A DNA stretch of 64,000 nucleotides, taken from contig NC_134030.1 of assembly GCF_964204645.1 (NCBI RefSeq), positions 11,181,947-11,245,946 on the forward strand, given 5' to 3'. Below the pieces are notes generated by a model that did no database searches, was not told the origin of the DNA, and was given only the letters and a program-made list of their open reading frames with translations. Each line of letters begins with the position of its first letter. The first letter of the stretch is position 1. The position numbers and the translations under genes were made by a program. Positions 4,640 through 52,399 of this stretch are shown piece by piece. The stretch is from Tubulanus polymorphus. Lineage: Eukaryota > Animalia > Nemertea.

Positions 4640-4900
4640 GAATTAAATGGGTAGATCTCTTTTATTCTGGACAACGATCCATGACGGTATCAGGCTATCT
4701 CTGTCAAAACTGGGCGAGTTCAGATCCGCATGTACCAGGGTACACTGTTTCAGAGATTCTTAGGCAAATGCCCGAAAGCTTTATCCATGATGCACAGAAC
4801 TATTGCCGCGAGGTTGGGCAAGTGGGCGTGCCATGGTGTTATACCGTCAATAATGAAAGATGGGAACGTTGTGGGATTACGGTGGCTTATGGAAATACCG
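4640..4900 (+). CDS. Exon: kringle domain 1 (first Cys missing)
   Basis: [36 protein letters not shown]; tttgcag acceptor, gtaag donor. Confidence 0.85.
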
Positions 4901-7900
4901 GTAAGATTTTTGAATTTCGTAGGCGTTAAGATAATAACAGCGACATATATACTTGCACATGTTTTTCATATTACACTCCAAAATATACAGTTGCCAAATT
5001 GCCTTACATTTGAAGATGTATTCGGTTTAGCTGCTGGGTTTAGAGAAAAACAAGAAAAATACTTACGAAAAAAATATTGGCGCCCGGTGGAAAAATGGAA
5101 AATGTAGTAGTATATACATATAGGTGAAATGTAATATGGAGGTTTGTGTATTTGGCAAATTTTCATGTAACTAGGGGTCCAGGGACACCAGGGACTCCTC
5201 CGGGTCATCTCTGGTATGGCGGTGATGAAAAATATGGCGGTTGGTTCAGTAGATCTGAACTTTCGATGTACATATATCAAGATATCAGTAATCTTAAGGA
5301 CATTCCATCGATTTTATCGGAGTAGGAAACTGCTTTTAGTGGAAATAGTGTTGAAAATGGAAGAAGGATGATTATAATCGAAAGAGGCAAAATAATAGGC
5401 AAAGTAGCAGACACGCTAAATCTCGGGTAGCCAGTCCACCCAGAGTCTTCTGACTTACTATGTAATTAGCTTTCCAGCCTAGCCCTAAATGGTTAACAAA
5501 CAAGGGTGAAGAGGTTCCAGATTTGAAAGCTACAGGCCGTAAAATAACATTCATTCAACATATTTCATTTTTTCGGTAAGAATTAAGTATTTCAATATAT
5601 CAGACAATCGGAAGAAAAGTCTCCAGTTGTAGGTAATTCTGGTGATTTCTTTGTGGGAGACATCTACAATTCCGACACTATGTCGTTTGTTTATCGAACG
5701 CTATGATCATTTCGCCACTCGTTGAAATTTTTAAAAAAGCGATGCGTGCGGCTATTTTTCTAAAACTGATGGTCGGTCTACGCTTTCAAATTTCGCTAAA
5801 GTAATTTTTAGGAATAGAATTTGATTTTTACTTACGCCCTGTCCATAGGACACTACCACATTTTCAATAAATTCGTTTCAGTTGCCTGTCACTGTATGAC
5901 TGCCATATGATGAAGTGTGAGACGAATATGTGCACGGCATATTAGTACACACATTTTTTTGAATCGAAATTTATTTTTCATACAGGTAATTTTGTATTTT
6001 CCGATCAACCTGGTAAGGCTACACTTAGCATAGGTCATTATTACGATACGGACATCTGTATCGGGCTTTGGTACGTAAAGAAGAACGTTGGCAAAGTTTT
6101 CGACCTGGTGTTGCAGTACGATGACGATCTAAATGACGTTTACTTATACTCGGAATACAGCCGAACGGAGCAATGGACATTCACCGATATAGATGTGGTC
6201 AACTCAGTGAAACAAAAATTCGCGGTAATTACATTAACAGATCATAACAACATTGAAACTTGAGTGAGACCGTTTTGCTGACATTCTACTTTTGTGTATC
6301 AGTTATTCTCAGCCAATCTAGCATGCCTAATGACTATTTTCTAATCAATGAATAAGAACACGAATCTAACAGTTGATCTTATTCAGGGATCTTTCAGGGA
6401 ACTTGTCGACCTTTACGGCCCTTTCTTTCGCTTAAGGTGTTCGTGTCAGGCTAAGAGTGTTATCAAATTTTTAATCCTTATTTACCGGGCACTTTCTTTG
6501 TTTGATACTCTGTTTTCTGTGGTGTGATATGTTTTTTAATGAGGGTGTGATACATGTTTCAGGTAACGATACTAATGAATAAGGATAATAATGACGTAAT
6601 AGCGATAGACGACATTGGGGTTGCAACGAAGAGCTGTTTCTCAAAGCCATATGGTATATTTCACACTCCTTTCGCTTTTTCCATTGCATTTGGAATTATG
6701 AACGAAATACTGATTGTACGGAATACATAGTAATTCCAATGAAAAACATGTATGTGTAATTTCAGGTACTAGAGCAATAGCAACGAATAATCGCAATTCC
6801 CCGAATAGATGGGTCGATGTTGATCAATCACGCGTCTATATCCATCTACAGGAATTCATGTCATTCTGGCATTGTGAAGAATTTTGCAAGACGCATTTTT
6901 CCGGGGCTGAATTGGGTCCATTCCGTTTGAGTCAATTAGACGAAATACAACTTCGCTTCAACGATAAATTCACAGGTATACTTACTATAATTTTAAGGTT
7001 GCGGCAACAGTTATGTATTCGATGACTCATTTCAATTTCAGCAACACAATACAACATTTATGCACGATTGATTGCTATATTCAATAAAGGCATTCTTCTG
7101 TTTAATGCAGATATTAAAAGGGAATACTATCCGGCTTGGATTAACAACAGAGTGTTCTCACATCGCCCTTTGTTCGGTATCCACAAGGCTGGTAGGCAGT
7201 GCTTAGGCGCCAATGCTTCAGGAATAGTCGTGTACGATTGTAATAAAAAGTTACCTTGCCTTTGTCAAATATATACAGGTAGGACCTGCGGCATCTCCTG
7301 ATATTAGATACACAGCCCCGTAGCGTAACCAATCTCATGCAGTTCGTTTCGTGAAAATACCTTTTTTGAGGGGTTCACCTTAAATCACTTGACCTTCCCA
7401 CGCTACGGGCCTGATACATACGTATAATGCTTCCAATATGATTAAAATAGACTATATGGTATACGGTAAAAATGTCCCGGGAGAAATGTCCCCGGAAAAA
7501 AATGTCCCGGAAAATATGTACCCGGAAAAATGTCCCAGAGAAAAAATGTTCCCGAAAAAAAATGTCCCAGTCTATGATTACTAACTTAATGTAGTTAATT
7601 TCGCATCATAATAACACTAGAGAACAAACATGGTAATACATTTTAATTACAATTTTAACATTTTATAACAAATAATGGCTCTTCTATGATTTAGATATTT
7701 GTATTACAAATTTAAAATGTCCTTAAATTTGACGTATTAATTGAAGTAACTGTGCATTTACTTTATAACTTTTCATAATTTCCTCCATTAATGATATGTA
7801 ATTTAGTAACTGCGCATTCAATTCAATAGTAAGATCTTCTTAAATTTGACGTATCATGTAATGAGTTCACATGTACTCAATAGGCAAAATTAATCAATGC

Positions 7901-10900
7901 TAAAATTTTAGGCCTATAATTCTCATGTTCACTCAATGAATTCTTTTTAATGGTTAGTGTGCAATTTACACAATTACCAAGTTTGTTCTCCCGATTAACA
8001 TTGATGTGTAATTTGCTAAATTATTAATGATTGACTGCCGGGACATTTTTTCTACCTCATGGGACAATTTTTCCCTTGGACATATTTTCCGGGGACATTA
8101 TTTCCCGGGACATTTTTACCTACATCTGACTATATACACGTGGAGGTACATTAAGTAACGATAAAACTAAGTACATTTACCGAGTGTATAATATCTATAT
8201 AATAATCTGTTCACGGCTGGATGGTAACCAGCGAGTTTTGGTCTCGAAGTCGATGTCAACTTAATCGACATCTAAAGGTTAAATGAAGTAGTTGAATTAG
8301 TAGTAGTTTAGCATGGGAGAAGTCTGTAAAATAGTTGGCTGGCTAGAAAATAGATTTGTTCAATCGGTGAGCCATTCGGACTTTCTTGGTACCGTTGGAA
8401 AGCCAACATCATTGGGGCTTCGGACGGAAATCTCAGCAATAACTCACAAACTATGATATATAGCCTTGACATTTCAAAACTGGAAACAATTTCAAATAAT
8501 TGCCAACAATCATCTAAATTGACCCAAAATGTTAGAAAAAGAAATTATAGATGGTTTAACGACAAGTGTCACTTCAGTGATACTATTCCAATAAACAATT
8601 CCAGCAGCTGTGTTATCCAGAAAGAGGTCTAGTCGTTTATAGTTCCTGTACGGCGAAAAACCTTGTCGTAAACGCCGTTTCAAGCGCTCCGGAGAAGCTT
8701 TCTATATTGCATCTATCATTTCGATCCAGTTGACAGCCTTAGGCGCAGCAAAATAGGCAAACAGTCTTTAGTGTTGGTAAGGCCTTCAATTTGATGTACG
8801 GGGACCACTGAGTGAAACACACATTCTCCTCAAACAACTTAGACCTTTAAAGCTACCCGTATCTAAATTTTATTTGGAATGTAAATAGTCCCTCAATGTA
8901 ACAAATCTACTTCGCAATGTCCCAACTGGACCACACTCATCGATAACTGACGATGCGAGCTACTAACATAGCTCGTGTCTACACAAAATATCGAGTTGCA
9001 GGACTACTAACTCTGAAAAGAGAACTAACACAACACGACAGGTATTGTATCCCAGTTTTATTGATGTACTCCTCAACTAACTACGAACTAACTCAACCCC
9101 CGGCAAACCCCAACTGCGTATGCTCATCTACCAATCATAATCTTTCGAATTCACACTCTCAAACTAACATAACACATTCACTCCTTACAGGTTGGAACGA
9201 AACTTGCTCATGAAATCAAAATCAAAATGTATACGGTATTTTGGGGCTATGAAAATTAGGCCAACCTTTAACGAGCTTTATATACAGGGGAAAATATGTT
9301 GATCGAATAATTATTCAAGAGCTCACTTGCTCTTCCCTAACATAACCCCTATATATATTATCCTTAGCATAACCCGATGGTTTTTTTACACCTGACTATG
9401 ATCTTCTGTGGAAGTTCAAAATCAATTTTGATTCGATAAATGAATTTGGTTTTTATCTTTGCACGTTGCGTTTATAGTGGGTTCTAATAATGTTACGTAT
9501 CATTTCTCAATGTCCGAGTGTGATTATTTTCTTAGTATCATCATTTCAATATTTTCAGGCTCTGGTGATGGGGTAGATATACTATCGAATTCTCATGCGG
9601 CGTCGTTATACATATCGCAAAATGGCACAACAACCGAATGGGAACCACTGCCGGGGAACCAACAATGCATAGACTTAAGAAGCGGATCTGTGCTTAAATA
9701 TGAGCTGCCTAAGCCTCACGTGATTCGTGAAATCCGAATAAGTAACGTCCAAGGTGCGTTGCTTCAATGTAACTTTAATGTTCATGTTTCGAAAAAACCT
9801 CTGAGATTTACTGTGGATTTTTTTTCTAGCTGCATTTATGGGAGTAAATGAGACAGATATTATCAATATTATTAATGAGGAAAAGAAAGGCCAGTGTAAA
9901 TTGACGCATTCCGGTGAGACTTATCGGGGTACCATATCACGGACATATACGGGAATCAAATGTCAAGCTTGGGCAACACAAGATCCACACGTATTCGACC
10001 AGGACGCGAACCACTTCCCGGAAAAAGACTTCGAAAAAGCGAAGAACTACTGCCGTAATCCTGACGGTGAGCCAGGTCCTTGGTGTTATACAACTGATCC
10101 TGATGTGCGCTGGGAGCTTTGTGAAATCTACCCTTGTAGCTGTAAGTGTATTCGAAAAATAATGCAACAAAAATAAAGTGACTGGTTTTCATCTAAGATC
10201 TAAATACGTAACATATGTAAATACGTAGTACACTTATTTCAGCTGACCTTGGTTCCGGTATACACTATACCTATATAAAAGGTTCGTTGAATTGATATAC
10301 AGTTGCTGTTGCTTAATCTGAGGAATTCGTATGCAGCGAAGTCTCATTCAAGGCCCGTAAATATAAATGCAAAAATTTTATAAATTTTTCACTGAATTCG
10401 TAAATATCATTTGTCTATATTTGACACACGCTGCATCTCTTGTTTTCAACTTCGTATCATTGATAATTTGTTTGTGACTTCCATGATTTTACTTTGGTAG
10501 CCGATATTTTCTCACGATTTCTGAAGTTTTCTCGCGCGAGAAAACCAAACTTTTTGAATTCTGCCGAGAGAAAAACAAACTTTTTGATTTCCCGCGCGAG
10601 AAAACCAAACGGGTTTATGTGAATATTCTATCGTTGCTTTTAGCCGTACAGAAAATCGTTTAGTATGGCCCGAATCAGCCGCCATATTATACGTGTTTCT
10701 AATAACCTACGTTGTTTATGAACGCATTTCTAATCATTGTAACTTTCTTGGGAGGGTGGTTCATTGAAATATTTGCTGTTTCTCCAAAGATGAGAGGTTA
10801 GCGGATTTGACGACTTATATGTAAACAACTCCTCATTTACTTCATTAGGATTGTCAGATTCGTGAATATATTCGAGCTATTTCTTCGTTCATTTGTATTA

Positions 10901-13900: not shown

Positions 13901-16900
13901 ATCGACGAAGTATCTAACGAAATTAAAAAAGGAGCACACTTATTTATAGGTGCCACAGAAATAGTTCAAATCATTATCCACAACAATAAACCGTTCCTAT
14001 TCTCACTACGTGGCGCTGCGGACATACGGAAGAAATCAGTTTGGCTTTTGTCATCCTCGCTGTCAGATGTGCTTTTACTGTTGTGGTGATTCACAGTTTG
14101 GCATTGTTCTGTGACCATGTGTACTTATGTTGAACTGTGTGGCTTCCCTTTTGCAGTTCGGAGCCTGTCGTCTGGGGTATTCCGCTGTGTGTGGAATAGG
14201 GGATAGTCCACTGTGTGTGGATGGCCAATGTGTTTGGACTTTGAGAATTTTTGATTATTTTGATTGCCCACTTCGGTGGTCGGATCCAATGTGTTTGGAC
14301 ATATTTTTTGATACGTATATTTTGATTGCCCACTTCGTTGGTTGGATCCAATGTGTTTGGACAAATTCTATAGATACGTATATTTTGATTGCCCACTTCG
14401 GTGGTCGGATCCAATGTGTTTGGACAAATTTTCTATGGATACGTATATTTTGATTGCCCATTTCGGTGGTCGGATCCAATGTGTTTGGACAAATTCTATA
14501 GATACGTATATTTCGATTGCCCACTTTGTTCACTTTGTGTGGACTAGAGGATGCGTGCCTTGCAGGACTGTGTGTCCTGTTGCCTACTGTGTGCGGGCTG
14601 GGGGTCTGTGTGCCCCGGAGTCCGCTGTGTGTGAGAAAAGATTGGAAGAATCGTTACGTTTAATAAAGAGTGATAATGAATAAGTGGATTTTAGGGCAGG
14701 GAAAACTCGAGCAGAGAAAACACGAGAGGTCAGGGTTGTTGGCTCTCCATATTCAATGTGTGTTTCGGTATAGTACGTTTGTGAGATTTATCGGTCAGGG
14801 AGTTCGCCTATTATTTCGGTTTTCTGATCCGTTCCGGTGATTTAATTAAGCGCATTTTCGTTTCCGTGGGGAGTTTAGTCGCGCTCAACGCCTGATTTAG
14901 TTTGCTCCGTTCGTGCGGGACGTGTGTCTAATACCTTACATTTTGCAGTTTTTCGCAGCTTCGTGTTGCGTTTGCCCTTGTATTCCACGGGTTTTTTTTG
15001 TTGGTCAATTTGTCTTTTACCGTTTTCCGAGGTGGAAATGAAATTGCAAAAGATTTGGTGAGCTCGACCTATCGACCTCTGGTATGAAACAACATATACC
15101 ATATCACTTAGTCTTCACCCAAGTTGTCGCTTATCGGTCGTTTTGCTGTCAACATTGATTCATAATACAGACAGATCAACTCACCGTTGAGTGAACGTCG
15201 CATGTGTGGCAGACAAGTGGCCTATATTGGTCGACCATTAAATAAATATAGAAATATAATAAAACTTAAACGATCAGATTGAACGATCCTACACCTGGAA
15301 TTAGATAATTTTGATTGTACCGATTAGGTTTTATATTTCACATACAACTTGCTCGTCGATCATTCAATTTTTCATCATGACACCATTACTGGTCACTGTG
15401 CATATATCGTAATTAAAGTAAACTTGAATCACTTCTTACTTTTTAACCATAGCTAAATGATCATTATACTCGCTCACTTCTATCAATTTCAGAATAAAAT
15501 GAAAACCATGGGCATATCTCGTTGGCTTTATACCTGGGCCCGTACTGAGATTAATACTAGTTTATAGAATGGGGCCCCAATTTTTTCAATGTTTTACACT
15601 TACCGGAATACATATATTATGATTTATCGAATTCTGAATTCGGCAGGGATTTATAGAATTGTTTTTATTTCAGAAAATCGAGTTTTTATCTATGGGAATT
15701 TGGAGCAGCATCAATCGGACAAACATAGTTACAATTTCGAACTCTTTGGCACACGTCGAATTCTTGTTACTACGATACCGCAACAGCTATCTGGAATAAT
15801 CTTTTCCATCGGTTATCGAAGTAATACGCATGGCGGCGCCATGCTTGCCAAATTAAAACGCGGAACTGTGTTGGATAAAAAATCGAATTGGAAATTTATC
15901 TTTCCAAAAAATGCAAACTTGCCTCATTTTTCAAGTAAATCTGAATATTGTACAGCCTCATTCACTGCAAACTCAACAAAGCATCAGCGGATAGTTGTGG
16001 AAAGTATTGTACGTATTTCCATAAAAAAGGGCTGGAGACCATCGACGATGGAACGATTGAAATTGCCAGTGTCAGGTGGCGATATGATAGCGCTACTCCC
16101 TCTCGGTGACGCTAATTTTGAATCATCGGAAGACCATAATATCACAAACCGGCCGGGTATGATATTTGATGCCATGGAAATATGTGATATTACCGATAAT
16201 GTGTTATGCGCAAGGAACATGACACGGGCATCTGTGAAAATATTTTTTTTCATCGAAGATGAGTATTCAGGTCTGTATTCTATTTGAGATTTTCGAGGTT
16301 GAATCGGTGTCTTAGGATTTTTTTAAAGACATTTTTTTATAAACCTAAAACTACTTGGAATTAACCTAAAAAGCCTTTTAATGGATACGTCTTCAAGTCG
16401 CTCCCAAACTAGGATTTGTGTGAAATTATACTTTTCTCCAAAAATATCTTTCAGGTAAACCTCACGTCCCTCGTGCAACGAATGAGGGTGCAGTACAGAT
16501 AATGACGAATAACGAACAGCATCAAACAGATTGCCGAATAGTTCCTCATCTGTATCCCCAATCTGATAGGGAGGTCATTCATGTGTGCCACGCGAACGAT
16601 GTTTCAAGCCTGATATTCAAAATAACAACGAATGTCACAATCTGTAGTATTTCCGCGTTTGGTTATCCAGGTAGAGTAAAAATGAGTAATGGAACGGTTT
16701 TGCTCTCAATCTGTAAAATCTTGCGAGCATCTAGCCTCAAGGCCTTTAGAATCTAGTGACACAACGTCATATTGGCGATGGCGGGCAACTAAAGCAAGGA
16801 GGCAAGATAAAAACATCGAAACAACGAGACGTGTTTCGTTGTTCAGTTCGACGGCTATTGCATACATGAAACAATGGGGAATCACAACAAATGTACAAAT

Positions 16901-19900
16901 GAAATAAACTTATTTCATTTTCAGATTTTGGCATACTTTCTTTTTAATTGATTTATTGAAGAAAAATTTATTCAGTTTCATTGAAATATAAATGGTATCG
17001 AACGCGGAAGACCGAGTAATTACTAGCGAAGTTGGTGGATCCTTGCTGCCATACGTAAAATCCTCAAGTGCCACAGGAGGTCGTAGGTGTCCCATACTGA
17101 CCAAGCGAAAATCAAACATGTTTGATTTGATCTGATTTGAACATTTTCTTTTTCAAAATTTGATTCCACAAACATTGATATTCGTTTCTCTTAAACGTAA
17201 ACGACACAAGGAGACGTTCAGTAACATGTTTCTGTCTTCTGTTATCGTGTTTCCCTGCGTTGTGTGCATTTTGCCTAAGTAGTTTAGAAGTATTAAGCTG
17301 AAAACGCACACGAAGTTTCCGCTCAAATAACAAGATATGGGCGAGTAACAATTGCTCATCAACATTTTTGCAACCGAAACGAACCGAGCGCTTTGCCAGG
17401 CGCCTCCAGCTGGTGGCGCCGCCAATATCTCTTTTGTTCTCTCAGCCAATCACTGTTGAGTACAAGTTCTTTTCTCTTCCACATCCCGAGCGTGAAAGGT
17501 TACGTTTTATTTTTGTCCTTATTTACCCCCCTTTGATCCTATTTTGCTAGGCCATCCGTGTCTAAATTCTATTCACACAATACGGCAGGATGTCAAGGAA
17601 CATTGTGATAGTTGGACATAGCTATATCAGGCGTTTGAAAGACTTTATTGAGGGAAATCATTCCACGTATTCAATCGTGAAGCCGGACTGTGGCCTGAAT
17701 GTGGAGCGTTTTAATTATTCAACACCTCGGTTGATCGGTATTGGGGGTGCAACGATCGATACTTTGGTCAATCGCGACATCCTGTCTTCCATAAATGAAT
17801 GCCAACCCTCATTAGTGATTTTACAGATAGGGTCGAACGACCTATGCAATCGGTACCTTACGCCAACATTCGTTGGGATGAAAGTTTTTCAATACGCGAC
17901 ATCGGTGGCCGAGCAGACTGGTGCTTTAGTGTACATTTGTGATCCTATATGCCGTATACCAGTTATAGAAATTTTAGTCGAGAAGCCGGGGATAAGAGAG
18001 AGTTTTTGAGATGCAGGAGTTCTTGCACACCGTCTGCGACGGTTGCAAGAATGCTTTTTCCTGGCGTCATCGCGGGTTTTGGAATTCGCGACATAACGTT
18101 TTTGCCCAAGATGGGGTCCACCTTAACCTGCAGGGACAGTTGATGTTTTATCGATCGCTACGTGGCGCCATTGTGAATGCCCATCACAAACTAAAAGACG
18201 ACCGGTGGCCAACTGCCGGTTCGTCCCAGTAAAACTGATAATCTGTGGAGAAACGACCGGTGGCCAACTGCCGGTTCGTCCCAGTAAAACTGATAATCTG
18301 TGTAGAAACGACTCTTACCGTTAAATTATTTGCGGGGCCTTAATTTACCTTTTATCTAACAGGTGGTCTCTGATTCTGACAGCAGGTTATATGACCTTAA
18401 TTGCCCTGTGTTTTTCGGTTATCAGGTGGTCTATTTTTGTTATTAATTTCATGGCCTTAATTGTCCTGTTATTCGGCAGGTGGTTTATGTTTATAGCTAT
18501 ACATTAAGGACTTAATTTTCCTGTTCAATGGGGACGGGTGTCCAGATGTTCGTATTTTCAACGTTTCAGGAGCCCACGTGCAGGGTTTGATTGCCCCGTC
18601 ATCACGGATAGTCGAAACGCTTGTTGTCCAATTATTTTATCGACGTTTAGACATGCAAAATACTCACTTTTCAGAACAACGAGTTAGTTTAATTTCCGTC
18701 GTGTATGCCGGGTACCCTTAGGGCTCATGTTTTTTTGGGATTAATTGTCCCGCCATTTGGTTAGGTGCCTTAAATTTATTGGTCTCATAGCGTCCTCAAG
18801 TGTGGTCTGCTTGTGACATATACGTTACTGTTTCTAATTTTAGGCTTAAAATCCTACCAGCGTCTATGCGGGTACCCTTCCTGAGTGAATTTTAATTACT
18901 ATATCCAAGAAAATTTTTGTTTTTGTTGTGTTGTAGTGTAGTAGAATTCATTCAAAATGAATCGTGGCAAAAGATCGTCGTCGGCAACCCAACGCGGTGC
19001 GAAACGTAGCCGAGTTTCAGCTGCGTCAACTAGTAGTACCCGAAGTTCAGCCGCACCGACGCGTAGTAGCCGAGTTTCAACTGCGTCGACGAGTATGCAG
19101 GAAAAAGAGGCAAGGGTCGACCGCCTCTTGGACACTCTGGAGAGGGCAGTGGCATTGTTGCCCCAAATTCAACAGGACGATGCCAATTCCGACAGATGAA
19201 GGTAATGGGGGCACTGCAGTGCTGCCCAACATGGGTCAGGAAACGCCTGCCCTGTCCATCGCCCCATCCAAGGCGGCCGCCTTGAAGTCGATCGAACAAT
19301 GGTTGCGTGCGTATGAAATATTTTGTGCGGTGCATCTTCGTAGTTGTCCGGCTGACGCCATACCTTTACTAAAATATGGCCGCAGTGTACAAAATTTGGC
19401 CGCCCAAGGGGAGGACTGGTCATTTTACGACATGAATTTCCGGGCAGAACGTTTCTCACCTGAGGGGGCCACTCGCAGTTGGGACACCGTCGATTGGGAG
19501 CTTTGGATGGAGTCCAAAACTCGACGCCCCTCCAGCCAGTCCTTTCGCAACAGCTCCTCGCAATCGCTCGCCAAAGTCTGTTTTGCGTACAACAGCTTCT
19601 CTGGGTGTACCCGGAAATCCTGCATCTATGCACACAGATGTAAATTTTGCAGGGGCTCACACTCGGCAGTCAATTGTGCCCGGTCAGCCGGCACTGGCAA
19701 CCAGCGTCCCGAAAGACCCAAGGCTGCCAAGCCTCCCCACACCGGTTGGAATAACTAAACTTCTACCCTACATTTTTGATTACGACTCTGAGCAACGCGA
19801 TTTACTAATCAACGGTTTTCAACACGGTTTCCGCATCGACAGTTTTTTCGGGGGACCAATCGCAAGCCGCGGTATCACAAATTTAAAGTCGGCTAGGGAT

Positions 19901-22900
19901 CATCCCGATGTGGTTCGGGAAAAGATTACGAAAGAACTTAATTTAGGGAGAGTTAGGGGTCTCTTCAGTGACCCATTTATGCCAGATGGTGCTCCGATTC
20001 ATGTTTCGCCCCTCGGCGTCGTGCCTAAAAGCTCGGGGGGTTTAGGGTTATCCATCACCTGTCCTACCCAAAGGGTTCTTCGGTTAACGACTTTGTCCCC
20101 GTGGATGCATCCACCATTAAAAATTCAACTATTCAAGATCAATCGATATAATCAAATCTCTGGGTCCGGACGTTTACCTTGCAAAAACAGATATCGAATC
20201 CGCGTTTCGCATTATCCCCATAAGCGAGTTTGACACCATTGTTGGGCTTTACCTTGGACGGCAAGTTTTATGTTGATGCTGTTTTGTCGATGGGGGCCTC
20301 TAGTTCGTGCGCTATTTTCGATCGTTTCTCGTCTCTTTTAAAGTGGGTAGCTCTTCATAAGTTAGGGTGCTCTTTCGCTGTACATATTCTTGACGATTTT
20401 CTGCTCATTGCAAAAGGCGAGCTCAAGTGCAAGCATGATCTAAACAACTTTCTACGACTATGTCACGAGATAGGTGTGCCCATTAAGCTAGATAAGACGT
20501 TCCCACCCGTTCGCCAGTTAACGTTCGCCGGAATCATGATCGATGCCGTTTTGCGGGAGGCGCGTTTACCTGAAGATAAATTACTCAAATGCCGCACCTT
20601 AGTGGATCAATTTTTAGATAAGTGTAAGGTAACTTTACGCCAATTACAATCGTTGATTGGCACTCTGAACTTTGCATGTGCCGTTATAGTGCCTGGCCGT
20701 CCCTTTCTCCGGAGACTGATTGATCTGACGGTCGGCGTGCCTCATAAGTCATTTCACATTACGCTCACGGCCGAGTCCAAAAAAGATCTCCACGTCTGTC
20801 GTGTTTTTCTCGCAGGCTTCAACGGCAAGTCGTTTTTCATAGACGACAGGAGATTGACTAACGAACGGTTGAACCTTTATACCGACTCGGGGCTATATTT
20901 GGGCCCCATTGGTTCAGTGGCGCCTGGCCGACCAGACGGCCAAAAATTACTCCATTGCAGTTCTAGAGCTGTACCAAATTGTAGCGGCTCTGGCCGTTTG
21001 GGGTGAGCAATGGCAGAATAAGACCATATGTTTTCATTCTGACAATCAAGCGGTTGTTCATGTCATCAATCGTCAGTCTTCACGGGACAGAGCCATGATG
21101 ACCCTTGTCCGGAAAATGGTATCGTAATTTGTTTAAAACGTAACATTGTTTTCCTCAGTGAGCATATACCAGGCCATCTTAATATTCTACCGGACTTCCT
21201 CTCTCGTTTTCAGTACCGCAGATTCCACTGGGCGGCACCGTGGGTCGACTCGGTCCCAACGGAGGTCCCTCGTCCTTGGCTCCCGGCAGGTATAGGCCCA
21301 CTATAGACAAACTGCTGGCTGCTGCGCTTAGTCCAGCTACGACCAGAGCATACGATCGCGCGTGGGGTAGGCTTGCCACTTTCGGTGCTCATTCGGGTAC
21401 CGACATATCTATACCAGTGGCCGCGACCACAATTAACTTATTCATCGCTCACTTGCACGAAACTATCAGCGTCCGCCATATCCTCATCCTTTTCGGCTAT
21501 TTCTTATTTTCATAAAATACGAGGGGCCCCGATCCCTGCAGATCATTTGTAACACAGAAACTAGTAGCGGGCGTGAGGAATTTGTCTCACAACCGCGACG
21601 TCCGATTGCCCATTACTCCCGTCATTATGTCTCGCTTGCTCGGTCATCTTTCTTCGTCGGAGGAGGCCTTGTCCAGTAGCCGCTTAGTGCAGTCAGTTAT
21701 GATCGTGGCATTTTGTGGATATTTTCGCATCGGCGAGTTATTACCCAGGGCTCTTGCCTCAGCGGGGGACGTGATACAGCTTCGAGATGTCACCGTCACG
21801 CCTTCTGGTCTTCAGATTATCGTACGCAAATTCAAACATAGCTCTCGCGTTGGCCCGCAGGTCATTCAGGCCGAATATTTGTCGCTACCCGTAGACATGG
21901 ATTTGGCTCTCATTATCTCGGATTATTTACGTTACAGAGGGCCCTTCCCTGGTCCGCTCTTTATAGATTGTTCCGGTAAGCCGTGGCTGCGCCGTGCGTT
22001 CGAGAGGCGTCTCGCAGTCTTGCTACATGGCTGCAAGCTTTCCACTTCCCTTTACAAGGGCCACTCTTTTCGCATCGGAGCGGCTACCAGCGCAGCAGCC
22101 AGGGGGTCCCCGATGCGCAGATAAGGGCAGCTGGCCGCTGGGGGTCGGAAGCTTACCGCAAGTTTATAAGGCTGTCTAGGTAGTCTCTGTGGGCTCAGCC
22201 ACATATGGGTGGCTGTGTGGCATTTTCTGAGCCCACTTTGGCGTATTAACTCATTAATTAATTAGGTCAAACAGCTAGGGCGTTTGACTTCGTCTTAATA
22301 TTACGTAACTCTGTATTATTCATCTCCATAACTAGGTCAAAACAGCTAGGGCGTTTTGGCCATAATTTTATGATTTTATGTTTATAATATCATTGTCTAA
22401 ATATTAGTTAATAAGTTTGTAATGGTTTTTTGTATACGTCAAAAACAGCTAGGGCGTTTTTGACATTTCTAATTTTTATGTTTTGTATATAATAAACGTC
22501 AAGTAGCTAGGGCGCTTGGCCTTTTCATCATAAACGTCAAGCAGCTAAGGCGCTTGGCCTTTTCATCTTCGGGTCGTTTCTGTTGCAAAAATTTGATTCC
22601 GCGTTCTGTGTTTTCTGTGTGTCCATCTGCCTTATGCGTATAGATCCTAGCGAACATGAACAAATGTGTCGATAAGCCGATCAATATCGACCATTATATT
22701 TCTCTATTTTTAATTTTTTTCAAAGCATATCAATGATGCTGCTGAACAGAAAGCTAATTATTCTGCTTTGCAGGTATAATCAATTTTTTTTCTGTGAATA
22801 GATAAAGTGGTGTTTAGGAACGTCTTGAAAAACCAAAGGTTTAGAATTGGAAACGTAGAACTTGGTTCACACGACAACCAATCGGTAAACAGCATGTTGT

Positions 22901-28900: not shown

Positions 28901-31900
28901 AGATTCAAAGATAATTGGTTTAGAAATTCGACCACTACCACGCGGGTATTTGAGGTTCATCACATTGGTCTTGACGGCAGTAAGAAAACCAGTACATTCG
29001 ATGAACTACCGACGTTGGTTGTGAACAGAAATGAAACTCTCCTCTTTCGGATAATTGTCAGACTTTCCGACAGCATATTTTCCGCCAAAGGTTTTTGGCT
29101 TAGATTAAATGTGACAGAAATAGGTAGGAACTTCAATCCCCGGTGTCGTCGCTTCAGGTATAAACGGAATCGTGGAACCTTCCAATAACGAATCGCTTGG
29201 GCATATGGGTACCGGGAAGTTTAATACACTACTACAGATTCGAACCATAAAGTAATAGACCGGATTTTCAAATAAAAGGCCTTATTCAACAGTCTTTCTC
29301 GTGACGGCATATCACGATGAACCATGTCATTTGACAAGTAATATTGGACTTTCACTATGCCACATTAGTAAGCGTTAGAACTACTTTAAGATAAACTGCT
29401 GTCACGAGGCCAACTATACCGGCTCACACCTGATGGTGGCAAGAGTCGCATAGTGTAGTGTACTTTGCTAATTTCTTTAGCAAATTGACAACACAGAAAT
29501 GAAAGTCCCGCAGCCTTAAAAGACTTCAGGCACCCAAATATCAGGAACTGTGGGTAGTACTACAATTTTCAATAAGGTATGAGGGGATTAAGCTTTCAAA
29601 TCAGAATACAAGCTATATATACTATCTTGCCACGCTAGAGGTGCACGTATACAATTGGTACGGCGGTAGAGTACCGCTATTACAATTCTGATAAAATTCA
29701 AACTGCAGGTAGAGAAAGATTGAGTGAAGACTGCTGTTAGGCATGACTTAAAACCGATTAGAAACATTTTGTACACTAAATAATCTTTGATTATCATTGA
29801 AAGAAATATACCCGAGATATTCCGGATAATACAATTGTTTTGATAGCTTATATTCGACGTTATTGAACTAATTCCGCAGAATCTATATACTTAGTGAAGA
29901 CATCGGTACAAAGAAGGGATGAATCTAACTTTTTACTGAAAATTATGAAATTGTATCCATCATCTTTTCTTTTATCGTATCTTACTTTATTCTTTGAAGA
30001 TTGCCCAGGATACGGATTCTTCGATGGGACTGATTCTTCTATTCGGAAGCTGGAAAAAGAATGTAGTATATTTGCGTCACCGCTGTTCCCGGTCAGGCAT
30101 GGGCGGTCATTATCCATCACATGGCACATCAAACTTAGATTATTTAGTAACTTCATTAAACTTACCTTCTACCAATTCGAATTAAAATCGTCTTCTGGTG
30201 GGTGCGCCGTTAACTACTTGGGCGTTTTACAAATAACAGGCTCCTTTGAACGGTTCTGTAACAACCATTTGCCACCTAGCGCTATTTTCAGTGATTGGCA
30301 TATGTTGACAATCAATATGACTGTTAGCGGATCATCTCCGAGAGGAACGGGATTTTTAGCAAATTACCAATCACTCGCCACTGTATACGATAAATATCTC
30401 GGAGGAAATGAATCAGGCTAGTGAAATGTGACGCAAGCTTTAGCATGTAGTAATGCAAACAGTGACGGAAATTTTATTCACTTAATTAATTAAGATATTG
30501 AAAAGACCATTATTGTGTCTTTCTTTTCTCTCCTAAAGCCATTCATTGGTTATGATTTAAATGAACGTCTAAATTTTTTCACATACATGATCATTCGTAT
30601 TTTTATCCGCAATTCGTATATGTTAACTTCATCGGTCTCTCTCATTGTAGCATCCAAATGTGAATCAAATTGGGTGTACCATGACGGCAATTGTTTGGGT
30701 CTACGGTCGGCTAATGAGAGCTCGTTTTTGAAGATTTTTGCTGCCAACAGACTTTGTGAAGCGGAAGGTGGTTTTCTTGCAAGCATTAAAAATGCAGACG
30801 AGGCTAAAACAATTCACTTCATCCTGATTTCCAACTTTCGGGGTCGGAAAACTCTGAGAAAAGTCTATATTGGTGATGACAAATGATTTCCATTTCTGGT
30901 TTTTTTCGTTATGGGTAACTATGTGTATAAATCCATCTTTAACCTTTATCCCATTATTCCATTTAGGTTTGTATGATAAAACTAACACTCGAGACTTCCA
31001 ATGGCTTGACAATAGTGCAGTAGGATTTACAGCATGGTGAGTTTATTCAGCAGCGTTTTTGTTTTAACACACTTGGTTCGCGTACTTCAATAATCACTAA
31101 ACATAATTTCCAAATTATAAGATTCTTTAATTCTATTATGAGCCACAACTAACAGCCATTTTCAGATGGAATAATCACAAATTAGTAGAATTTATCAAAT
31201 CTAATGTGTATTACAATTCAAAATTGTTATGATATCACTATCATCTAATCTTTACACATTATTTCATATTTCGTCCACAACAACTGGTCTTTAGGGCCAT
31301 GGGGCAGCCTGATGGAGGAGCATTAGAGAGGTGTGTCTATTTAGATCAAAGGTCACTGAAACCTGATGTGTCCCGGTCAAATTGGTTCGATTTTCCGTGT
31401 GGTCGACCGACTACGAATCACTATATTTGCAAGAAACCGAGCGCAAGATTACCATCAGATGAAAGAGGTAAAAAGATTCTCGATCATTTGGGTAAAGACA
31501 TTTCCTACAAAATTTCTATGACATACTTCCAACGTCTTTAGAGCGTATGTTCAATTGGACGCAGCTTCTAACGATGCCGTCAGGTAACGATTCCATGTGC
31601 GCTGATTATGGATTGGTTCCATGTAAGAATGGAGAATGTATACACAAAACTGACGTTTGTAATGGTATCGAAAATTGTCGAGATTCATCGGATGAAACAA
31701 ATTGCGGTAATTATAGTAACAGTTTGTGCTAACATTCTAATAAATATATCGATAATAATATAGGTAATAATAAAAATAATAATGGTGATAATGTTATGTC
31801 GGAGTTGTGGCGATGTCGCTGTCAAAATACATATAAACGTACTATAGATAACATAATAACGAGATTCTATTCATTACCGTTAGAAAGTAGCAACCACGCT

Positions 31901-34900
31901 GTGAATTTTTCCAAAGGCATTTCTTCACTATCAAACACGCTTATTTCGGAAGACTTAAATCCGGATATCGATCAAATCAGGGTATTGATAATCATCTGTC
32001 CAATCAAATATGATTTTTATTCGGATTTCCCATAAACTGGATTAATTCTATTGGTCCCAAAACATCCGATCGCCAATGATCGGGTGAGTTATGTAGCAGT
32101 AGGGGACGATTGTCGTATAAAGAGAAAATAAGGTTTTCAATTTCACACATTTTGCATTGCTCAATAGGTACCAATACTTCGTGATGATTTCCAAAATTAA
32201 TTCAATGATGTGATCTTTAGTCCATCCAAATAGTATATATACCTGCTTATTTTCTTGAATCGAAGTATTTTTCGTCATCAATGTTTCAGCAACACACTGT
32301 CCTGGAAATAGGTTTCAATGTGGTAACGGGCGATGCATATCCTTATCATACCTGTGTGATTTCAGAAACGACTGTGGGGATGGATCTGATGAATCATTTT
32401 GTCGTTAAGTCTTTATTTTCGTTAAATGATTAAAATTTCCGATGATAACAGAAACAGCTAATGTTTTCAATGATTGACAATGAAACATAATTCATAATGA
32501 ATTCAAGAAAATCGCTGAAATATTTTGCTATTTGATATTGTAGATCACCCAGCGTGTAATGCTGCAGAGTACGAGTGTCAAAGTGGCCAATGCATCCCAA
32601 ATATGAAACATTATGACCACGTAACGGACTGTATCGATGGATCAGATGAGGTACCCGATACAGGTAACATCACTCGACACCGAATGAAATTTCTCTTAAA
32701 TGAACTGTTACCAAAAGTATTCCAATCACTTGAGTAACAGGAAAAAATTGACCCAAAAGTGACGCCTTAATGAATAATTGTGACATATTTCCGATAATGA
32801 CAAGCGTAATATTAATAATATAACATTAGTGATCAAGTTATTTAGATTTCCATATATCGCAATTGAATCGAATTGACCAGCAACCATGATTCTAGCCTGA
32901 ATTGAGACGTATTGCAATAAGTCATGAAATTCAGTTTCAAATACACAATTGTAACGGCATAATACACAAAATGTAAGGGTCAAGCTGCTAGAGTACGAAA
33001 CGACGAAATTGCGAGATATGAAACGGAATTACGAAATGCAAAACGAAATTACGAAATATTAATTTTTTTGCGAGTAGTGCTTAAGTACGTGAAACGAAAT
33101 AAGAAACAAATGGTCATATTTCAAACACGACCATACTATAGTCACAGCTCGCGATGACGCCACGGGACTGTCCAAAGTTGGGCGGTACAAGTAAATGATC
33201 TTTTGAAAGTATTCAGGAATTCTATCTTCTTAAACTGAAAGGTGTTTAGCCTATTGACATTTTGAGACGGTCACAAAGTTGATATGATAAATTATACATC
33301 GGAATCTATAGTGTGTGGTCGTTATTTCATTTCATCCATCGTGGATCAAACAATATGATTTGCTTTAAGGAACCAGAAAGTCACCTGATAGCGTGAATTC
33401 AAAGTGAGCGTTTCCAGGAAATCAATAATGAAGCCTAAGCCTAAAAAATGAATATCTTGTTTCTCCGCCGCGGCCAGGTCATTTTGTAAATTCCTATAAA
33501 ATGTTTTGATCTGGTCATTTCTATAGCTGCCGGGTCTGTTATTGTATGCCTGATCATTGAAAAAAGTAATGTACAGGGCGGAGGTGGCCGACCGACCCAC
33601 ATTTTAAGCTCAGCAGAGTGGAGCAACAAGCTTTGGGTATCATTATTTAGCCTAAACACAGCAGGATGTGTTTGCACACTTCGTTCCCTAACCCGTAATT
33701 TATTGATCGGTTCCTTCAAGTTATATGAGCATGCGTAGATCATTTTCCCCTCACAGGGATTCGAACCTGCTGATATCGCTAAACTCGGCCAAGGCGTTGA
33801 ACCCCGCCATATTAGACCGATTGCGTATGTTTAATTAAGCCAGCTGCATGAGTCTGCCAATTTCGTTTCGAACATGTATTCCATTTCACAATTTAGCAGG
33901 ACACGCGAAAGAATGGCCATTTCGTTTCGTACTTCAGCATTTCGTTATTTCGTTTCATATTTCGTTTTTTTCGGTTTTTTCTTTCGTAGAATGCAACGGG
34001 TTCCAGTGTTACGATGGATCGTGTCATCCGTCCGCTTGGAAATGTGACGTAACGTTAGATTGTTCGGGTGCATTTCGAGAAGATGAAACCGGTTGTACTA
34101 AACGTAAGCGAAATACCGGACCGTGCTTTCATGGAACATATTCTGGCGTGGAAACTTTCCACTAATGATCGATTACCAAGTGATTCAATTACCGTCTTTC
34201 ATCGTTTGTTTTCGAGGAATACCGCAAGATGGATTCACTGAATGCGCCAACGGTTTCGTTTACAACTCTTCGCAAAACTGTATGTACGACTTGGATCAAT
34301 ACGGATATTCAACACCATGTCGGGATTATTCACATCTCATTGACTGCGGTAATAAAAAACCTCTTGCCACTCTAATCGTCCATTAGATCTTCTTAATTAT
34401 AACATGGAATTTGAAAATGCAATCATATCACATCAACGGCTGGTGAGATAATGTCGAAAAAATTAAATGAATTTTGCTTTATTTCATATGCTGCGTTGTC
34501 TGTCCAGTTTTATCCGCTTCGTTTGGTCCCATTTACTTACATGTAGTGCAAATAAGGGCTACAGTTATTCTTGCAACCAATAATACTTCTTGAAAAGAAT
34601 ACACATAACTTTTTTGTATGGTATAAAACCCGTCGGAGATCATACAGATTTGATACCGAGATTGCGTAAATGTTATAGCAAGTTTTATGTTTTAATCAAT
34701 GAATAAGACCTATCTCTACTTTCAGCACGTTTTATTTGTCCACCTGGCTATTTCAAATGTTCTACTAGCTACTGTATCGCAGCAAAGTTCGTTTGCAATG
34801 GACAACCAGAATGTCCTAACAAAGAGGATGAACACAACTGTGGTATGCCGTCATCTATGATGAGATGCGAAAATCTACCAACAGACAAGTGAATCACAAA

Positions 34901-37619
34901 ATATCTTTATTTCTTTGATTTACAGACACATACGTATGCCCTGGTATGTACAGATGTTCTTCGACAAAACAGTGTGTGCCTCTGAACGAAGTGTGTGACA
35001 GGATAAATCAGTGTCCGAGCAACGATGACGAACGATTTTGCGACATGGAAATTCCTAGTCCCTGTATCGGGTACGGTTATTCCTTGTCTTGTCATTCAAT
35101 GGAACAAAGCCATCTACCACCCAACGGCAATTACTTTGTCGCCAGGTCGATTGGTTTATTCAACAATACACAGTTGAGTCTAAACTCCGCTACATTTCGT
35201 TCGTTCACTTATTTGACTTACCTCGACCTAAGGTTGTGCGGTGTGAAAGAAATATCGACGGGAATCGTATCATATTTACTTAATCTTCTTTTTCTTGATC
35301 TTCGTGATAATCCGTTGGTGATTATTCAAGTCAATAGTTTGAGTCTTGCAAATCTTCGATCTGTCCAGCTCTACGGGAATAAAATCCTTTCCACAATAGA
35401 ACATGGCACATTTTCGAACACATCCGCTCTGGAAAAACTCGATCTGCACGGAACAAACCTTACTGTTCTAACATCAGGTATGTTTCTAGGACTCTCATCA
35501 GTAAAATCATTGAATCTCAGTGGCAGCAATCTTGTTGAAATACAGGATGGTGCATTTGAAGGTCTCGGCAATGTATCGCATTTGGATATATCTAACAATG
35601 ACATACAGACATTTAGCAGTGTGATTTTCATTGAACTTAGATCTCTGAGTTATTTACGAAGTGATCATTATAAGTTCTGCTGTATGGCTGAAGGTGTCTT
35701 GGAAGCTAACTGTTACCCTCCAAAAAATATATTTTCATCTTGCTCTGATTTGATGAGCAGCTACGTCTTACGGGTTAGCCTGTGGATCGTTGGGACCGTA
35801 GCTCTAGTAGGAAATCTCGTAGCTGTACTGATTCGCTTTTGTTACGATCCGTTGTTGTCAGCAAATGGTCGATTAACTCTAAGTCTTGCGCTATCAGACT
35901 TCGCGATGGGTATGTATATGTACGTTATCGCTAGCGCCGATACTTACTTTCGTGGTACCTACATCATACACGATGAAAAGTGGAGAAATGGAGCATTGTG
36001 CAAGTTTGCAGGATTTCTCGCGACATTATCTAGTGAAGTATCCATGATAATGTTGTTAATCATGTCTTTAGACAGATTCGTGGCAGTCGTATTTCCTTTC
36101 TCCCAATTGAAACTGACACCTAGACGGGCTTCAATTTGCATCTTTTTTACGTGGTTGTCTGGTTTTGTCATTGCTGTTTTGCCTCTTCTACCCATTCAAT
36201 ACTTCGACAAATTCTACTCGCGTTCTGGAGTGTGCTTGTCTCTACATCTAACGTCTGAAAAGCGTCCTGGTTGGGAGTATGCTGTTGCGGTGTTTATTGG
36301 ATTAAACTGCGTGGGGTTCATTGTTATAGCCGCGTGTTACGTATGCATGTACAACGTTATATCTAGATCTAGCCAAAAAAGACACCAAATGAAGTCCCAA
36401 GTTACAGAAGTAGCTGTCGCAAGAAAGATGATGTTAATAATACTCACAGATTTCTGTGCTTGGATGCCGATAATCATACTAGGTAGGTGCGGCATCATAG
36501 CACAGGTTATTCACGTCACTTAAGTTATACATGTTGTGCAGTTGTTCTTCGTGCAGCTTGAACTTATCGAATGTCATTCTAAGGCTACATAGCTGCACCT
36601 TTAATGCTTCTTATTTAAATTTTAGGAACGCTTGCAGTTAGTGGTCAGGTTACGATTCCGGGTGACGTTTACGCATGGATAGCCGTATTTGTATTGCCGA
36701 TAAACAGTGCTATTAATCCCTTGCTGTACACCATAGCAGGCTACAGATCTATGTAAGTCGTCTTGCAATAAAAAATACCTTTGATCAAGATAGCCAGATT
36801 ACATTGCATTGGAATATGTAAACCGACTGCGAATGTATTATCTTTTCAGTAGAGAAAATGCAAGAAAACGGAAGTTCGATGCACTACGTAAGTTTTCGAT
36901 TCAATAAATCAATTCTTAGTACAATTTATCCATAATCGTAGACATTATAGATGTAAGATTTAAGAGATCCAACGAATCCGTGCCATGCCATGTCTTTTTC
37001 AGAAAACGACCTTAGAGATGGAAGTACTAAAGATGTAACACTTTTGTTACCGAATGTTCTACCCATAGTTAGTCATGAGAACCTGAGTCATTTGTCAACA
37101 TTATCGTCGTTCTTTCGCAACGAGAGAAATGTGGATCTACGCACGGCACTTATTATACTGCGCCGACTCGCAAATGCGATACATGAAATCCATTCTAGAG
37201 ATATGTCTCTGAAAACGCTAGACGTAAACATAATACTTGTCGGAAATAAAAAGGTAGACACATTTTCCACAATATGTACGCCTATCTGTAAAAAGTAATT
37301 AAATAGCTTTAGGGCTGCAGCAACTACATTGTATGTTTTACTCATCCTGATTCCACATCCAAGAGGAAACCAGTTTAATTCCCCTCCCCCATCCAGTACC
37401 GTAGCAAACAAATATTTATGAAGTCACCCCTAAATCTATGAATCAATGGCAGAATTTTCTATCGTGTTTCAGAACACTCATGATGGCAAACTGGACGTTT
37501 TTCTCACCACTGATAGGGTACACGGGTTAAACGGCATTGCAGAAGATATCTTACAGTTTGGTAAAATTGTGCTGTTTATTTTGCGTAAAATGAGTACTTT
37601 CAAGAAACGAATGGAGTAG
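4640..37619 (+). CDS. GRL101: Giant multi-exon GRL101-like LDLa/LRR GPCR (type C LGR) with mosaic ectodomain and kinase-like tail; 5' end not located
   Basis: About 35 same-strand exons with canonical acceptors/donors and compatible phases (mostly phase 1 between domains), running to a TAG at 37617-37619. The link between 30000 and 37619 is strong. The link to exons upstream of 30000 is inferred from phase only. Confidence 0.7.
5986..6653 (+). CDS. Exons 5986-6224 and 6563-6653: MAM-like domain
   Basis: [21 protein letters not shown] joined in phase 0 to [20 protein letters not shown]; IAIDDI..C is the MAM C-terminal signature. Confidence 0.7.
6766..7278 (+). CDS. Exons 6766-6975 and 7111-7278: divergent C-type lectin domain 1
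   Basis: [39 protein letters not shown]. Confidence 0.75.
7458..8127. mobile_element. MITE with AAAAATGTCCC(GG) subterminal repeats
   Basis: GGTAAAAATGTCCCGGGA.. / ..TCCCGGGACATTTTTACC TIRs; inverted homologous copy at 55448-55998. Confidence 0.8.
9559..10281 (+). CDS. Exons 9559-9753 (unassigned), 9830-10141 (kringle domain 2) and 10243-10281 (possible linker)
   Basis: [53 protein letters not shown] is a canonical six-Cys kringle. Confidence 0.85.
10955..11513 (+). CDS. Exons 10955-11073, 11163-11289 and 11403-11513: C-type lectin domain 2
   Basis: [49 protein letters not shown]; phases compatible. Confidence 0.8.
12163..13043. mobile_element. Intronic TIR element (GGG..CCC termini, Harbinger/ISL2EU-like)
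   Basis: GGGTCTGTCTAAAGAACATACGTCTAACTGCCC matches the reverse complement of GGGCGGTTAGAGGTATGTGCTTTAGACAGACCC; TSD unclear. Confidence 0.7.
14225..14527. repeat. Tandem repeat, ~61-bp unit, about 5 copies
   Basis: Repeats of CCAATGTGTTTGGACAAATT..TTTTGATTGCCCACTTCGGTGGTCGGAT. Confidence 0.9.
15674..16670 (+). CDS. Exons 15674-16270 (unassigned ~199-aa domain) and 16455-16670 (F-type-lectin/galactose-binding-like half domain)
   Basis: Long stop-free frames between tttcag acceptors and G|GT donors; second exon ends in [15 protein letters not shown]. Confidence 0.6.
17590..18232 (+). pseudogene. SGNH/GDSL hydrolase (esterase) ORF of the retrotransposon, frameshifted near 17970-18010
   Basis: Blocks [17 protein letters not shown] and DGVHL. 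Confidence 0.85.
18957..19758 (+). pseudogene. Gag-like ORF with CCCH/CCHC zinc fingers, frameshifted near 19190
   Basis: [23 protein letters not shown] and [29 protein letters not shown]. Confidence 0.8.
19730..21300 (+). pseudogene. Reverse transcriptase-RNase H, several frameshifts
   Basis: [53 protein letters not shown] and HSDNQAVV spread over ORFs 19583, 20230 and 20909. Confidence 0.9.
21290..22183 (+). pseudogene. Tyrosine recombinase, frameshifted
   Basis: [45 protein letters not shown]. Confidence 0.9.
22802..23332 (+). CDS. Exons 22802-22957 and 23102-23332: F-type-lectin/discoidin-fold domain
   Basis: [25 protein letters not shown]. Confidence 0.7.
23610..27976 (+). CDS. Exons 23610-23761, 25146-25298 and 27817-27976: FA58C/discoidin domain
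   Basis: [21 protein letters not shown]|[17 protein letters not shown]; phase-0 joins. Confidence 0.8.
23835..24953. mobile_element. Intronic MITE with ~110-bp TIRs (hAT-like CGGTGTT termini) and an internal ~77-bp tandem duplication (24183-24340)
   Basis: CGGTGTTCTCATATCGTGGAATGACGGAATCGCGGAATTTT matches the reverse complement of AAAATTCCGCGATTCCGTGATTCAGCGATATGTCAACACCG. Confidence 0.8.
26693..27318. mobile_element. Foldback MITE with ~200-bp TIRs
   Basis: 26693-26900 is the approximate reverse complement of 27132-27318. Confidence 0.85.
28316..30416 (+). CDS. Exons 28316-28452 and 28898-29123 (divergent CUB) and 30000-30416 (CUB)
   Basis: [21 protein letters not shown]; [39 protein letters not shown]. 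Confidence 0.8.
30651..31467 (+). CDS. Exons 30651-30872, 30967-31036 and 31295-31467: C-type lectin domain 3 with QPD motif
   Basis: [57 protein letters not shown]. Confidence 0.9.
31542..34842 (+). CDS. Six single-exon LDLa repeats (31542-31706, 32290-32403, 32544-32663, 33990-34103, 34217-34348, 34726-34842)
   Basis: C..F.C.NG.CI....CD...DC.DGSDE..C patterns; one is the GRL101-type variant CMYDLD..G...CRDYSHL..C; all phase 1-1. Confidence 0.9.
32994..33988. mobile_element. Degenerate inverted-repeat element with (ACGAAAT)n ends and a tRNA-derived SINE-like fragment (about 33740-33830, - strand)
   Basis: ACGAAA-rich left arm versus TTTCGT-rich right arm; GGTTCGAATCCC B-box on the - strand. 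Confidence 0.5.
34926..36752 (+). CDS. GRL101: Exons 34926-36482 and 36626-36752: LDLa7, LRRs, hinge and rhodopsin-class 7TM of a GRL101/RXFP-like receptor
   Basis: LxxLxLxxN repeats; type C LGR hinge KFCC..CYPP..SSCSDLM; SLDRF in TM3, TDFCAWMP in TM6, [13 protein letters not shown] in TM7. Confidence 0.95.
36850..37619 (+). CDS. Exons 36850-36887, 37003-37253 and 37473-37619: cytoplasmic tail with kinase C-lobe-like (pseudokinase) segment, then stop
   Basis: In-phase splice chain from TM7; [45 protein letters not shown]. Confidence 0.7.
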
Positions 37620-41574: not shown

Positions 41575-41825
41575 GAAACGTGTAAAAAGTGCTGATTTTG
41601 GAGAAAAACAATGGCTGCCATTGATTCTGACAGGACCAGTTTTTGGGCTGAAGATGTGTCAAGGGTAGATACATGTGTTACCCAAATATCAAGTCATTAC
41701 ATTGAAGCGTCTTCAAAACTTCCCAAAATAACTGGAGTCCGTCTACGGACGGACGGACGAACGAATGGACGAAGGACGAAAAGTGAACGCAATAGCCCGC
41801 TGTGACTGAAGTCCCAAGTGGGCTA
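41575..41825 (-). mobile_element. HINE terminal fragment
   Basis: (GGAC)n microsatellite followed by a TAGCCC..GGGCTA hairpin. Confidence 0.75.
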
Positions 41826-52218: not shown

Positions 52219-52399
52219 AAAGGGATGTAGACCAACAGCCAATCAAAGTTTGCATCCCAGAAAACACCAGAAAAATTTACAAAAATCAGGACGATCAAAA
52301 AACGCATGAAACGAAAACTGAAAAAATTCATAAAATTCGAGATAATAAATTCCAAGTAATCGAACGGAACTCCAATCAAAACGCCAGTCGACAAATTCA

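Follow-up and report, generated by a model that had tools for sequence, protein, structure and literature searches.

The question raised by this locus of the nemertean Tubulanus polymorphus is whether a long chain of exons encoding kringle, lectin and other extracellular modules belongs to a single receptor gene, and what kind of receptor that would be. The window, i.e. the whole 64-kb stretch analyzed, corresponds to C6:11181947-11245946, and the genome searched was 268 Mb. The receptor core is related to GRL101, an orphan since 1994 that has been interpreted variously as a receptor for IGF, a chemoreceptor or an immune receptor. Our analysis supports a single gene of GRL101-like type. Its fresh point is a conserved, predicted pseudokinase domain in the cytoplasmic tail, more than the mosaic ectodomain to which the original prediction drew attention.

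We rebuilt 34 plus-strand exons between 4640 and 37619 from the sequence (Table 1). AG acceptors, GT donors and matching phases are found throughout, with a sole GC donor at 30416. The exons contain 7,625 coding nt, or 2,541 codons, and a stop count over the chain showed each to be open up to the TAG at 37617-37619. This agrees well with the original proposal of about 35 in-phase exons on one strand encoding some 2,550 aa. The 33 introns comprise 25 of phase 1, six of phase 0 and two of phase 2. The start codon and signal peptide lie outside the 64-kb window. An exon for the beginning of the MAM-like domain places the gene start at least 33 kb upstream of it, and the exons 5' of the window would bring the whole protein to about 2,600 aa. 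Three candidate features were rejected: an acceptor at 22774 that would bring in an in-frame stop, a GT donor at 30420 with mismatched phase, and an exon at 26915 that did not match the discoidin register, the true middle exon of that domain being 25146-25298.

A genome-wide search revealed at least 83 related LRR (leucine-rich repeat)-7TM (seven-transmembrane) exons. Four have 66-69% identity to that of the window, two of them on C7 and one each on C10 and C60; the C60 locus is close to that on C10, and may be a haplotype of it. At four full-length paralogous loci, counterparts of the window's exons follow one another in unchanged order on the same strand, 33 of the 34 being recovered in three of the four with only a 12-aa exon unmatched. 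At the level of sequence, this colinearity excludes chance as the source of the exon chain. The compact C7-plus copy retains phase-matched splice sites, at the corresponding positions or close to them, for 32 of 33 exons; the exception is the terminal exon. The introns of this copy are just 68-448 nt in length, and there is therefore no space for a gene boundary. Each paralogue opens with a signal-peptide exon, followed by an exon for the start of the MAM-like domain. Given that four paralogues keep the exon order, and that C7-plus keeps both splice positions and phases, the whole chain is supported as one gene, as was originally supposed.

The window copy has introns of 4-6 kb, and its upstream exons might be thought to form a separate gene for a secreted protein. 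In the compact paralogue, however, all the exons are in phase across its short introns; they are headed by a single signal exon and none within the chain is a terminal exon, and we regard a separate gene as exceedingly improbable. It is less far-fetched, if still unlikely, that the family is real and the window copy itself is a 5'-damaged or silent duplicate. Its signal-peptide exon was not found in the upstream sequence, its first intron of about 38 kb carries large mobile elements, and a sixth locus (C10:13.75 Mb) has only 5' exons in the stretch examined, without the 3' half. Yet the 34 exons and the upstream MAM exon are all open with intact splice sites, and this persists despite 30-65% divergence from the paralogues in many exons.

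Identity between the copies is 31-74% in the outer exons (mostly 35-60%) and 54-92% in the LDLa and 7TM exons. The two C7 paralogues lie tail to tail (C7:19436000-19463000). Their CUB-to-7TM part is 96% identical over 5 kb and 99% over 1 kb, and they diverge in the outer exons and the tail, a pattern of patchy gene conversion. Clusters on C9, C12, C6 and C10 contain dozens of related receptors with LDLa-LRR-7TM in single open frames of about 1,090 aa. Their exon structure differs from that of the window gene, which belongs, in this genome, to a small subfamily rich in introns.

Homology and fold searches were run exon by exon, with the split MAM, C-type lectin (CTL) 1 and F-lectin-like domains scored as parts. 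Among database proteins the closest comes from another nemertean, Lineus longissimus, and GRL101-like relatives were found in Lineus, molluscs, chelicerates, echinoderms and hemichordates. The best relatives of the 7TM region have E-values down to 1e-121; several are named GRL101 or GRL101-like, and all have Pfam 7tm_1. The region has DRF in transmembrane helix 3 (TM3) and NPxxY in TM7, and exon 34926 aligns end to end with relatives bearing LRR_8. The defining features of type C2 LGR/GRL101 receptors are multiple LDLa repeats, LRRs and a 7TM like that of relaxin receptors (PMC8286064, PMC4079206, PMC11863921). By these features the predicted receptor is a type C2 LGR, i.e. a GRL101-like rhodopsin-class G protein-coupled receptor (GPCR), and the signaling core that had been proposed is borne out by its LDLa, LRR and 7tm_1 relatives. 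Seven LDLa repeats had been counted. Six stand; the other is a Cys module specific to the family (34217-34348). We rejected a type C1 LGR (RXFP1/2, LGR3/4), which has one or two N-terminal LDLa, where six are present here and are preceded by about 1,550 aa. An adhesion GPCR (7tm_2 with GAIN/GPS) was also rejected, as all scanned relatives are 7tm_1 and the LRR-hinge precedes TM1. In a quick unrooted tree, for a set without RXFP/LGR3/LGR4 or Lymnaea references, the window receptor falls loosely with Lineus P0005 among GRL101-like sequences.

The tail had originally been left as an unnamed end. A cross-species profile and a fold match indicate that it is in fact a kinase-derived domain. In around 30 relatives (nemertean, mollusc, chelicerate, echinoderm and hemichordate), TM7 is followed by a shared block of about 120 aa in which one His is invariant and a DI..FG.L helix is present. 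On comparison of the tail-family profile with the PDB, protein kinases accounted for all of the 60 matches listed, including TYK2 (E = 1e-9), VRK3 (3e-9) and BRAF. Taken individually, 7 of 28 relatives' tails matched PK_Tyr_Ser-Thr. An AlphaFold model of the Lineus tail has a predicted local distance difference test score (pLDDT) of 86, and its best structural match is the RNase L kinase domain (Z = 11.4, root-mean-square deviation 3.8, 119 aligned). Foldseek with this model also returned kinases, but with E only about 2e-3. The window exons were outside the profile training set, and scored E = 1.6e-10 (exon 37003) and 2.6e-4 (exon 37473). Using profiles from half-sets, held-out tails scored 8-99 bits and exon 37003 scored 20-30 bits, with shuffled or reversed controls at or below 5.5.

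Neither HRD nor DFG is present in any of the 28 tails, and the window exon has MSLKTLD at the catalytic-loop position. The domain is too short for an N-lobe, and the Gly-loop, the VAIK region and the N-lobe sheet are missing. Given the lack of HRD and DFG and of the N-lobe sheet, the tail is predicted to be a dead, miniaturized kinase remnant. It would share with the pseudokinases VRK3, RNase L, PAN3 and PEAK3 the core fold of the kinase C-lobe without catalytic motifs. It differs from them in comprising only about 120 residues, from an alphaC-like helix to alphaF with no N-lobe sheet and no alphaG-I, and in its fusion to a rhodopsin-class 7TM.

The tail block is present in 36 of 119 relatives. 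Of the 48 that continue for 150 aa or more past the TM6 region, 35 have it, a fraction that is partly circular as most of these were in the profile. Tail-bearing relatives are scattered over the quick tree, and this suggests an old kinase fusion followed by losses. Run over this genome, the cross-species tail profile found few copies, which is a lower bound; the large genomic expansion may be without the kinase tail. The best genomic match (E = 1.6e-14) is in a GRL101-like gene of 38% identity at C3:25810121-25813420 on the minus strand, possibly a conserved copy of ancestral type. No description of a GRL101 kinase remnant was found in the literature searched, which reached few subscription journals. 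A remnant of this kind, conserved on rhodopsin-class GPCRs in animals as far apart as ticks and starfish, would represent a signaling element so far overlooked, and as a segment of about 120 aa that folds with pLDDT 86 it is open to direct testing.

In the ectodomain the proposed module order stands for the two kringles, CTL2, discoidin, CUB2 and CTL3, which together with LDLa, LRR and 7TM are well supported. The MAM, CTL1, F-lectin-like and CUB1 assignments are weak or motif-only. Pfam scans of individual exons gave no match for the degenerate modules, and the MAM-like exons had no significant match in the PDB. The model of exon 15674 gave a best Z of 7.5, with many sandwiches of carbohydrate-binding-module type among the matches, which is not decisive; a search of the ESM Atlas with this exon gave no usable result. 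A pairing of exons 9559 and 16455 as the two parts of a single F-lectin, interrupted by nested inserts, found no support with hhalign (1-2%). CTL2 exon 11403-11513 has an alternative acceptor at 11385.

The first MAM exon is followed by that of kringle 1 and then by the second MAM exon, and kringle 1 therefore appears to be inserted within the MAM domain. No nested kringle of this kind was seen in relatives elsewhere, and no MAM was found in giant RefSeq models. The C7-minus paralogue has no match to either kringle exon, and the phase-1-1 kringle exons have therefore been gained or lost whole. Loss is the more parsimonious reading, with the direction blurred by homogenization of the C7 copies (96% over 5 kb). 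The preponderance of phase-1 introns and the presence or absence of kringle exons between paralogues are both as expected for the exon shuffling originally suggested. The CUB-CTL-LDLa block adjoining the core is conserved, and the outer modules are variable. By alignment, the motif of CTL3 is QPD in the window, QPN in the C7 copies and EPN in C10/C60, and the domain has WFD or WYD in place of WND. EPN is the mannose motif and QPD the galactose motif (PMC5379193). The differences among paralogues in whole kringle exons and in EPN/QPD provide natural comparisons for ligand finding.

Table 1. Features of the receptor gene and of its largest intron. Positions are those of the window unless prefixed by C6.
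Feature	Position	Strand	Evidence
First MAM exon, 33 kb upstream of window	C6:11148801-11148917		Pfam MAM E 0.016, profile positions 1-38, below cut-off
Kringle 1, phase 1-1 (exon 1 in window)	4640..4900	+	Pfam Kringle E 3.3e-11
Degenerate MAM-like domain, middle and end	5986-6224, 6563-6653	+	Motifs only (IAIDDI..C); kept in paralogues
Degenerate C-type-lectin-like domain 1 (CTL1)	6766-6975, 7111-7278	+	hhalign 23% to CTL2 exon; Cys pattern; kept in paralogues
Exon, possibly N-half of galactose-binding-like domain	9559..9753	+	38-42% in paralogues; assignment not significant
Linker and kringle 2, phase 1-1	9830..10141	+	Pfam E 1.1e-25
C-type-lectin-like domain 2 (CTL2), without EPN/QPD	10955-11073, 11163-11289, 11403-11513	+	hhalign 89%
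198-aa all-beta jelly-roll-like module, most divergent exon	15674..16270	+	AlphaFold2 pLDDT 64
Exon with motif like C-half of F-lectin-like domain	16455..16670	+	45-51% in paralogues; hhalign not significant; second F-lectin-like call motif only
Frameshifted DIRS/Ngaro-like retrotransposon, outside protein	~17300..22600, in intron 16671-22801	+	SGNH/GDSL Pfam E 4e-4; RVT_1 E 2e-5
Degenerate F-type-lectin-like domain	22802-22957, 23102-23332	+	Best PDB match FBP32, E 0.25
Discoidin/FA58C domain	23610-23761, 25146-25298, 27817-27976	+	hhalign 93% and 91%
CUB1, degenerate	28316-28452, 28898-29123	+	hhalign 7.5%
CUB2, GC donor	30000-30416	+	hhalign 99%
CTL3, membrane-proximal C-type lectin, QPD motif	30651-30872, 30967-31036, 31295-31467	+	hhalign 98%; alignment
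Five LDLa-type repeats and family-specific Cys module (34217-34348)	31542-31706, 32290-32403, 32544-32663, 33990-34103, 34217-34348, 34726-34842	+	
Sixth LDLa, LRRs, short hinge, rhodopsin-type 7TM	34926-36482, 36626-36752	+	Matches to Pfam-typed relatives
Tail with truncated, predicted catalytically dead protein-kinase-fold domain	36850-36887, 37003-37253, 37473-37619 (stop 37617-37619)	+	

The uniqueness implied for this architecture does not hold. A GRL101-like receptor with CTL-LDLa-LRR-7TM has been published (PMC12297450) and near-equivalent giants exist in RefSeq, so that the class is widespread and partly published. Lymnaea GRL101 (type C2 LGR, arthropod LGR5) is likewise an orphan, with multiple LDLa, LRRs, a short hinge and a 7TM of relaxin-receptor type. 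By comparison the window gene has six LDLa rather than twelve, an N-terminal extension of about 1,550 residues with MAM, kringles, lectins, discoidin and CUB, and a kinase-fold tail of which there was no mention in the GRL101 literature searched. The GRL101-like genes of Biomphalaria sudanica SudRes2 share the CTL-LDLa-LRR-7TM order, clustered paralogues and a proposed role in immune recognition, but with one CTL only; CUB, discoidin, kringle, MAM and a tail domain are not reported (PMC12297450). Uncharacterized RefSeq entries of similar size (2,300-2,800 aa), all of them computational models only, come from Lineus longissimus (XP_064641999.1), Acanthaster planci (XP_022097833.1 and XP_022098818.1), Saccoglossus, Ptychodera, Dermacentor and Ostrea, and combine kringle, discoidin, CUB and CTL modules in differing ways. 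The Acanthaster models have two kringles, three F5/8, EGF, three CUB, two CTL, LDLa, LRR, 7TM and a kinase-like tail, and that of Saccoglossus has six CUB. These giants differ from the window gene in module order and in the lack of any MAM found, with ApeC in tick and oyster and EGF in starfish. RXFP1 and RXFP2 (type C1 LGRs) share the LDLa-LRR-7TM logic, but have a single LDLa, a short ectodomain and known ligands of the relaxin family.

What might such a receptor do? We lean towards surveillance, in immune or chemical sensing; the pattern-recognition or chemosensory role originally suggested is plausible. The outer modules would bind a large extracellular ligand, such as a glycan or glycoprotein of microbes, parasites, prey or matrix, the membrane-proximal QPD/EPN lectin CTL3 being the likeliest real sugar-binding site. 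Relaxin receptors relay ligand binding through LDLa, LRR and hinge to the 7TM, and on this pattern the same elements here could pass on the binding signal, whereupon the 7TM would activate G proteins. The kinase remnant, unable to catalyze, might provide a folded module for docking or oligomerization. In Biomphalaria, CTL-bearing GRL101 genes lie in a schistosome-resistance region identified by genome-wide association (PMC12297450), and in apple snails GRL101 genes are expanded, and expressed in tentacles (PMC6573481). Several points weigh against a role in surveillance. Most of the outer modules are degenerate, without the canonical motifs for sugar binding, and no signal-peptide exon of the window copy was found within 56 kb upstream of the first MAM exon. 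As far as is known, every GRL101 is an orphan receptor. In addition, the top variants of the Biomphalaria association lie in a neighboring Zn-RING-IAP gene, not in GRL101 (PMC12297450).

Veenstra has proposed an insulin/IGF-like peptide as the ligand of GRL101/LGR5. The LRRs would then bind this hormone, with the outer modules accessory, in localization or matrix anchoring. The 7TM and LRR are related to those of the relaxin, gonadulin and dilp7 receptors (PMC8286064, PMC7357564), and conservation within the protein is highest in the LDLa-LRR-7TM core. Yet so many related 7TM exons (at least 83), with differing outer modules, exceed the needs of one hormone, and we consider a hormone receptor rather unlikely. 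MAM, CUB, discoidin, kringle and LDLa are all modules characteristic of adhesion and uptake receptors, and amphioxus adhesion GPCRs acquired them independently (PMC2246102). The protein might signal via its 7TM as an adhesion receptor, or as an endocytic one of scavenger type, with self ligands such as matrix, lipoprotein or gamete coats. However, no GPS/GAIN cleavage site was seen and the lectin motif varies among copies, and on present evidence this seems quite improbable. Returning to surveillance, a broader form of that proposal is possible, if doubtful: GRL101-type receptors may be an unrecognized pan-bilaterian class of hybrid sensors acting as invertebrate pattern-recognition GPCRs. They would combine an exchangeable, exon-shuffled, even nested, lectin/CUB/kringle ectodomain with a rhodopsin 7TM and a conserved miniature pseudokinase having a scaffold-type output independent of G proteins.

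Among the mobile elements in and near the gene, the DIRS/Ngaro-like element at 17300-22600 also has gag-like, RNase H and tyrosine-recombinase-like frames, the latter two read by eye. In the long 5' intron, about 8-19 kb upstream of the window (C6 ~11163000-11174000), there are long frames that by eye resemble a Polinton/adintovirus, including a polymerase-like frame of 1,367 aa and ATPase-, integrase-, capsid- and penton-like frames. An integrase-core frame (rva_4, E = 1e-25) on the minus strand at 650-1438, in the intron before 4640, is a mobile-element remnant. Downstream of the gene are dispersed arrays of a 154-bp repeat (38088-45480) and, on the plus strand at 50600-55230, a long interspersed element in several frames, with endonuclease (Pfam E = 3.5e-10) and reverse transcriptase (7.5e-27) matches. 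A 63-bp array is present at 14256-14526, and there is a (TA)48 tract at 48249.

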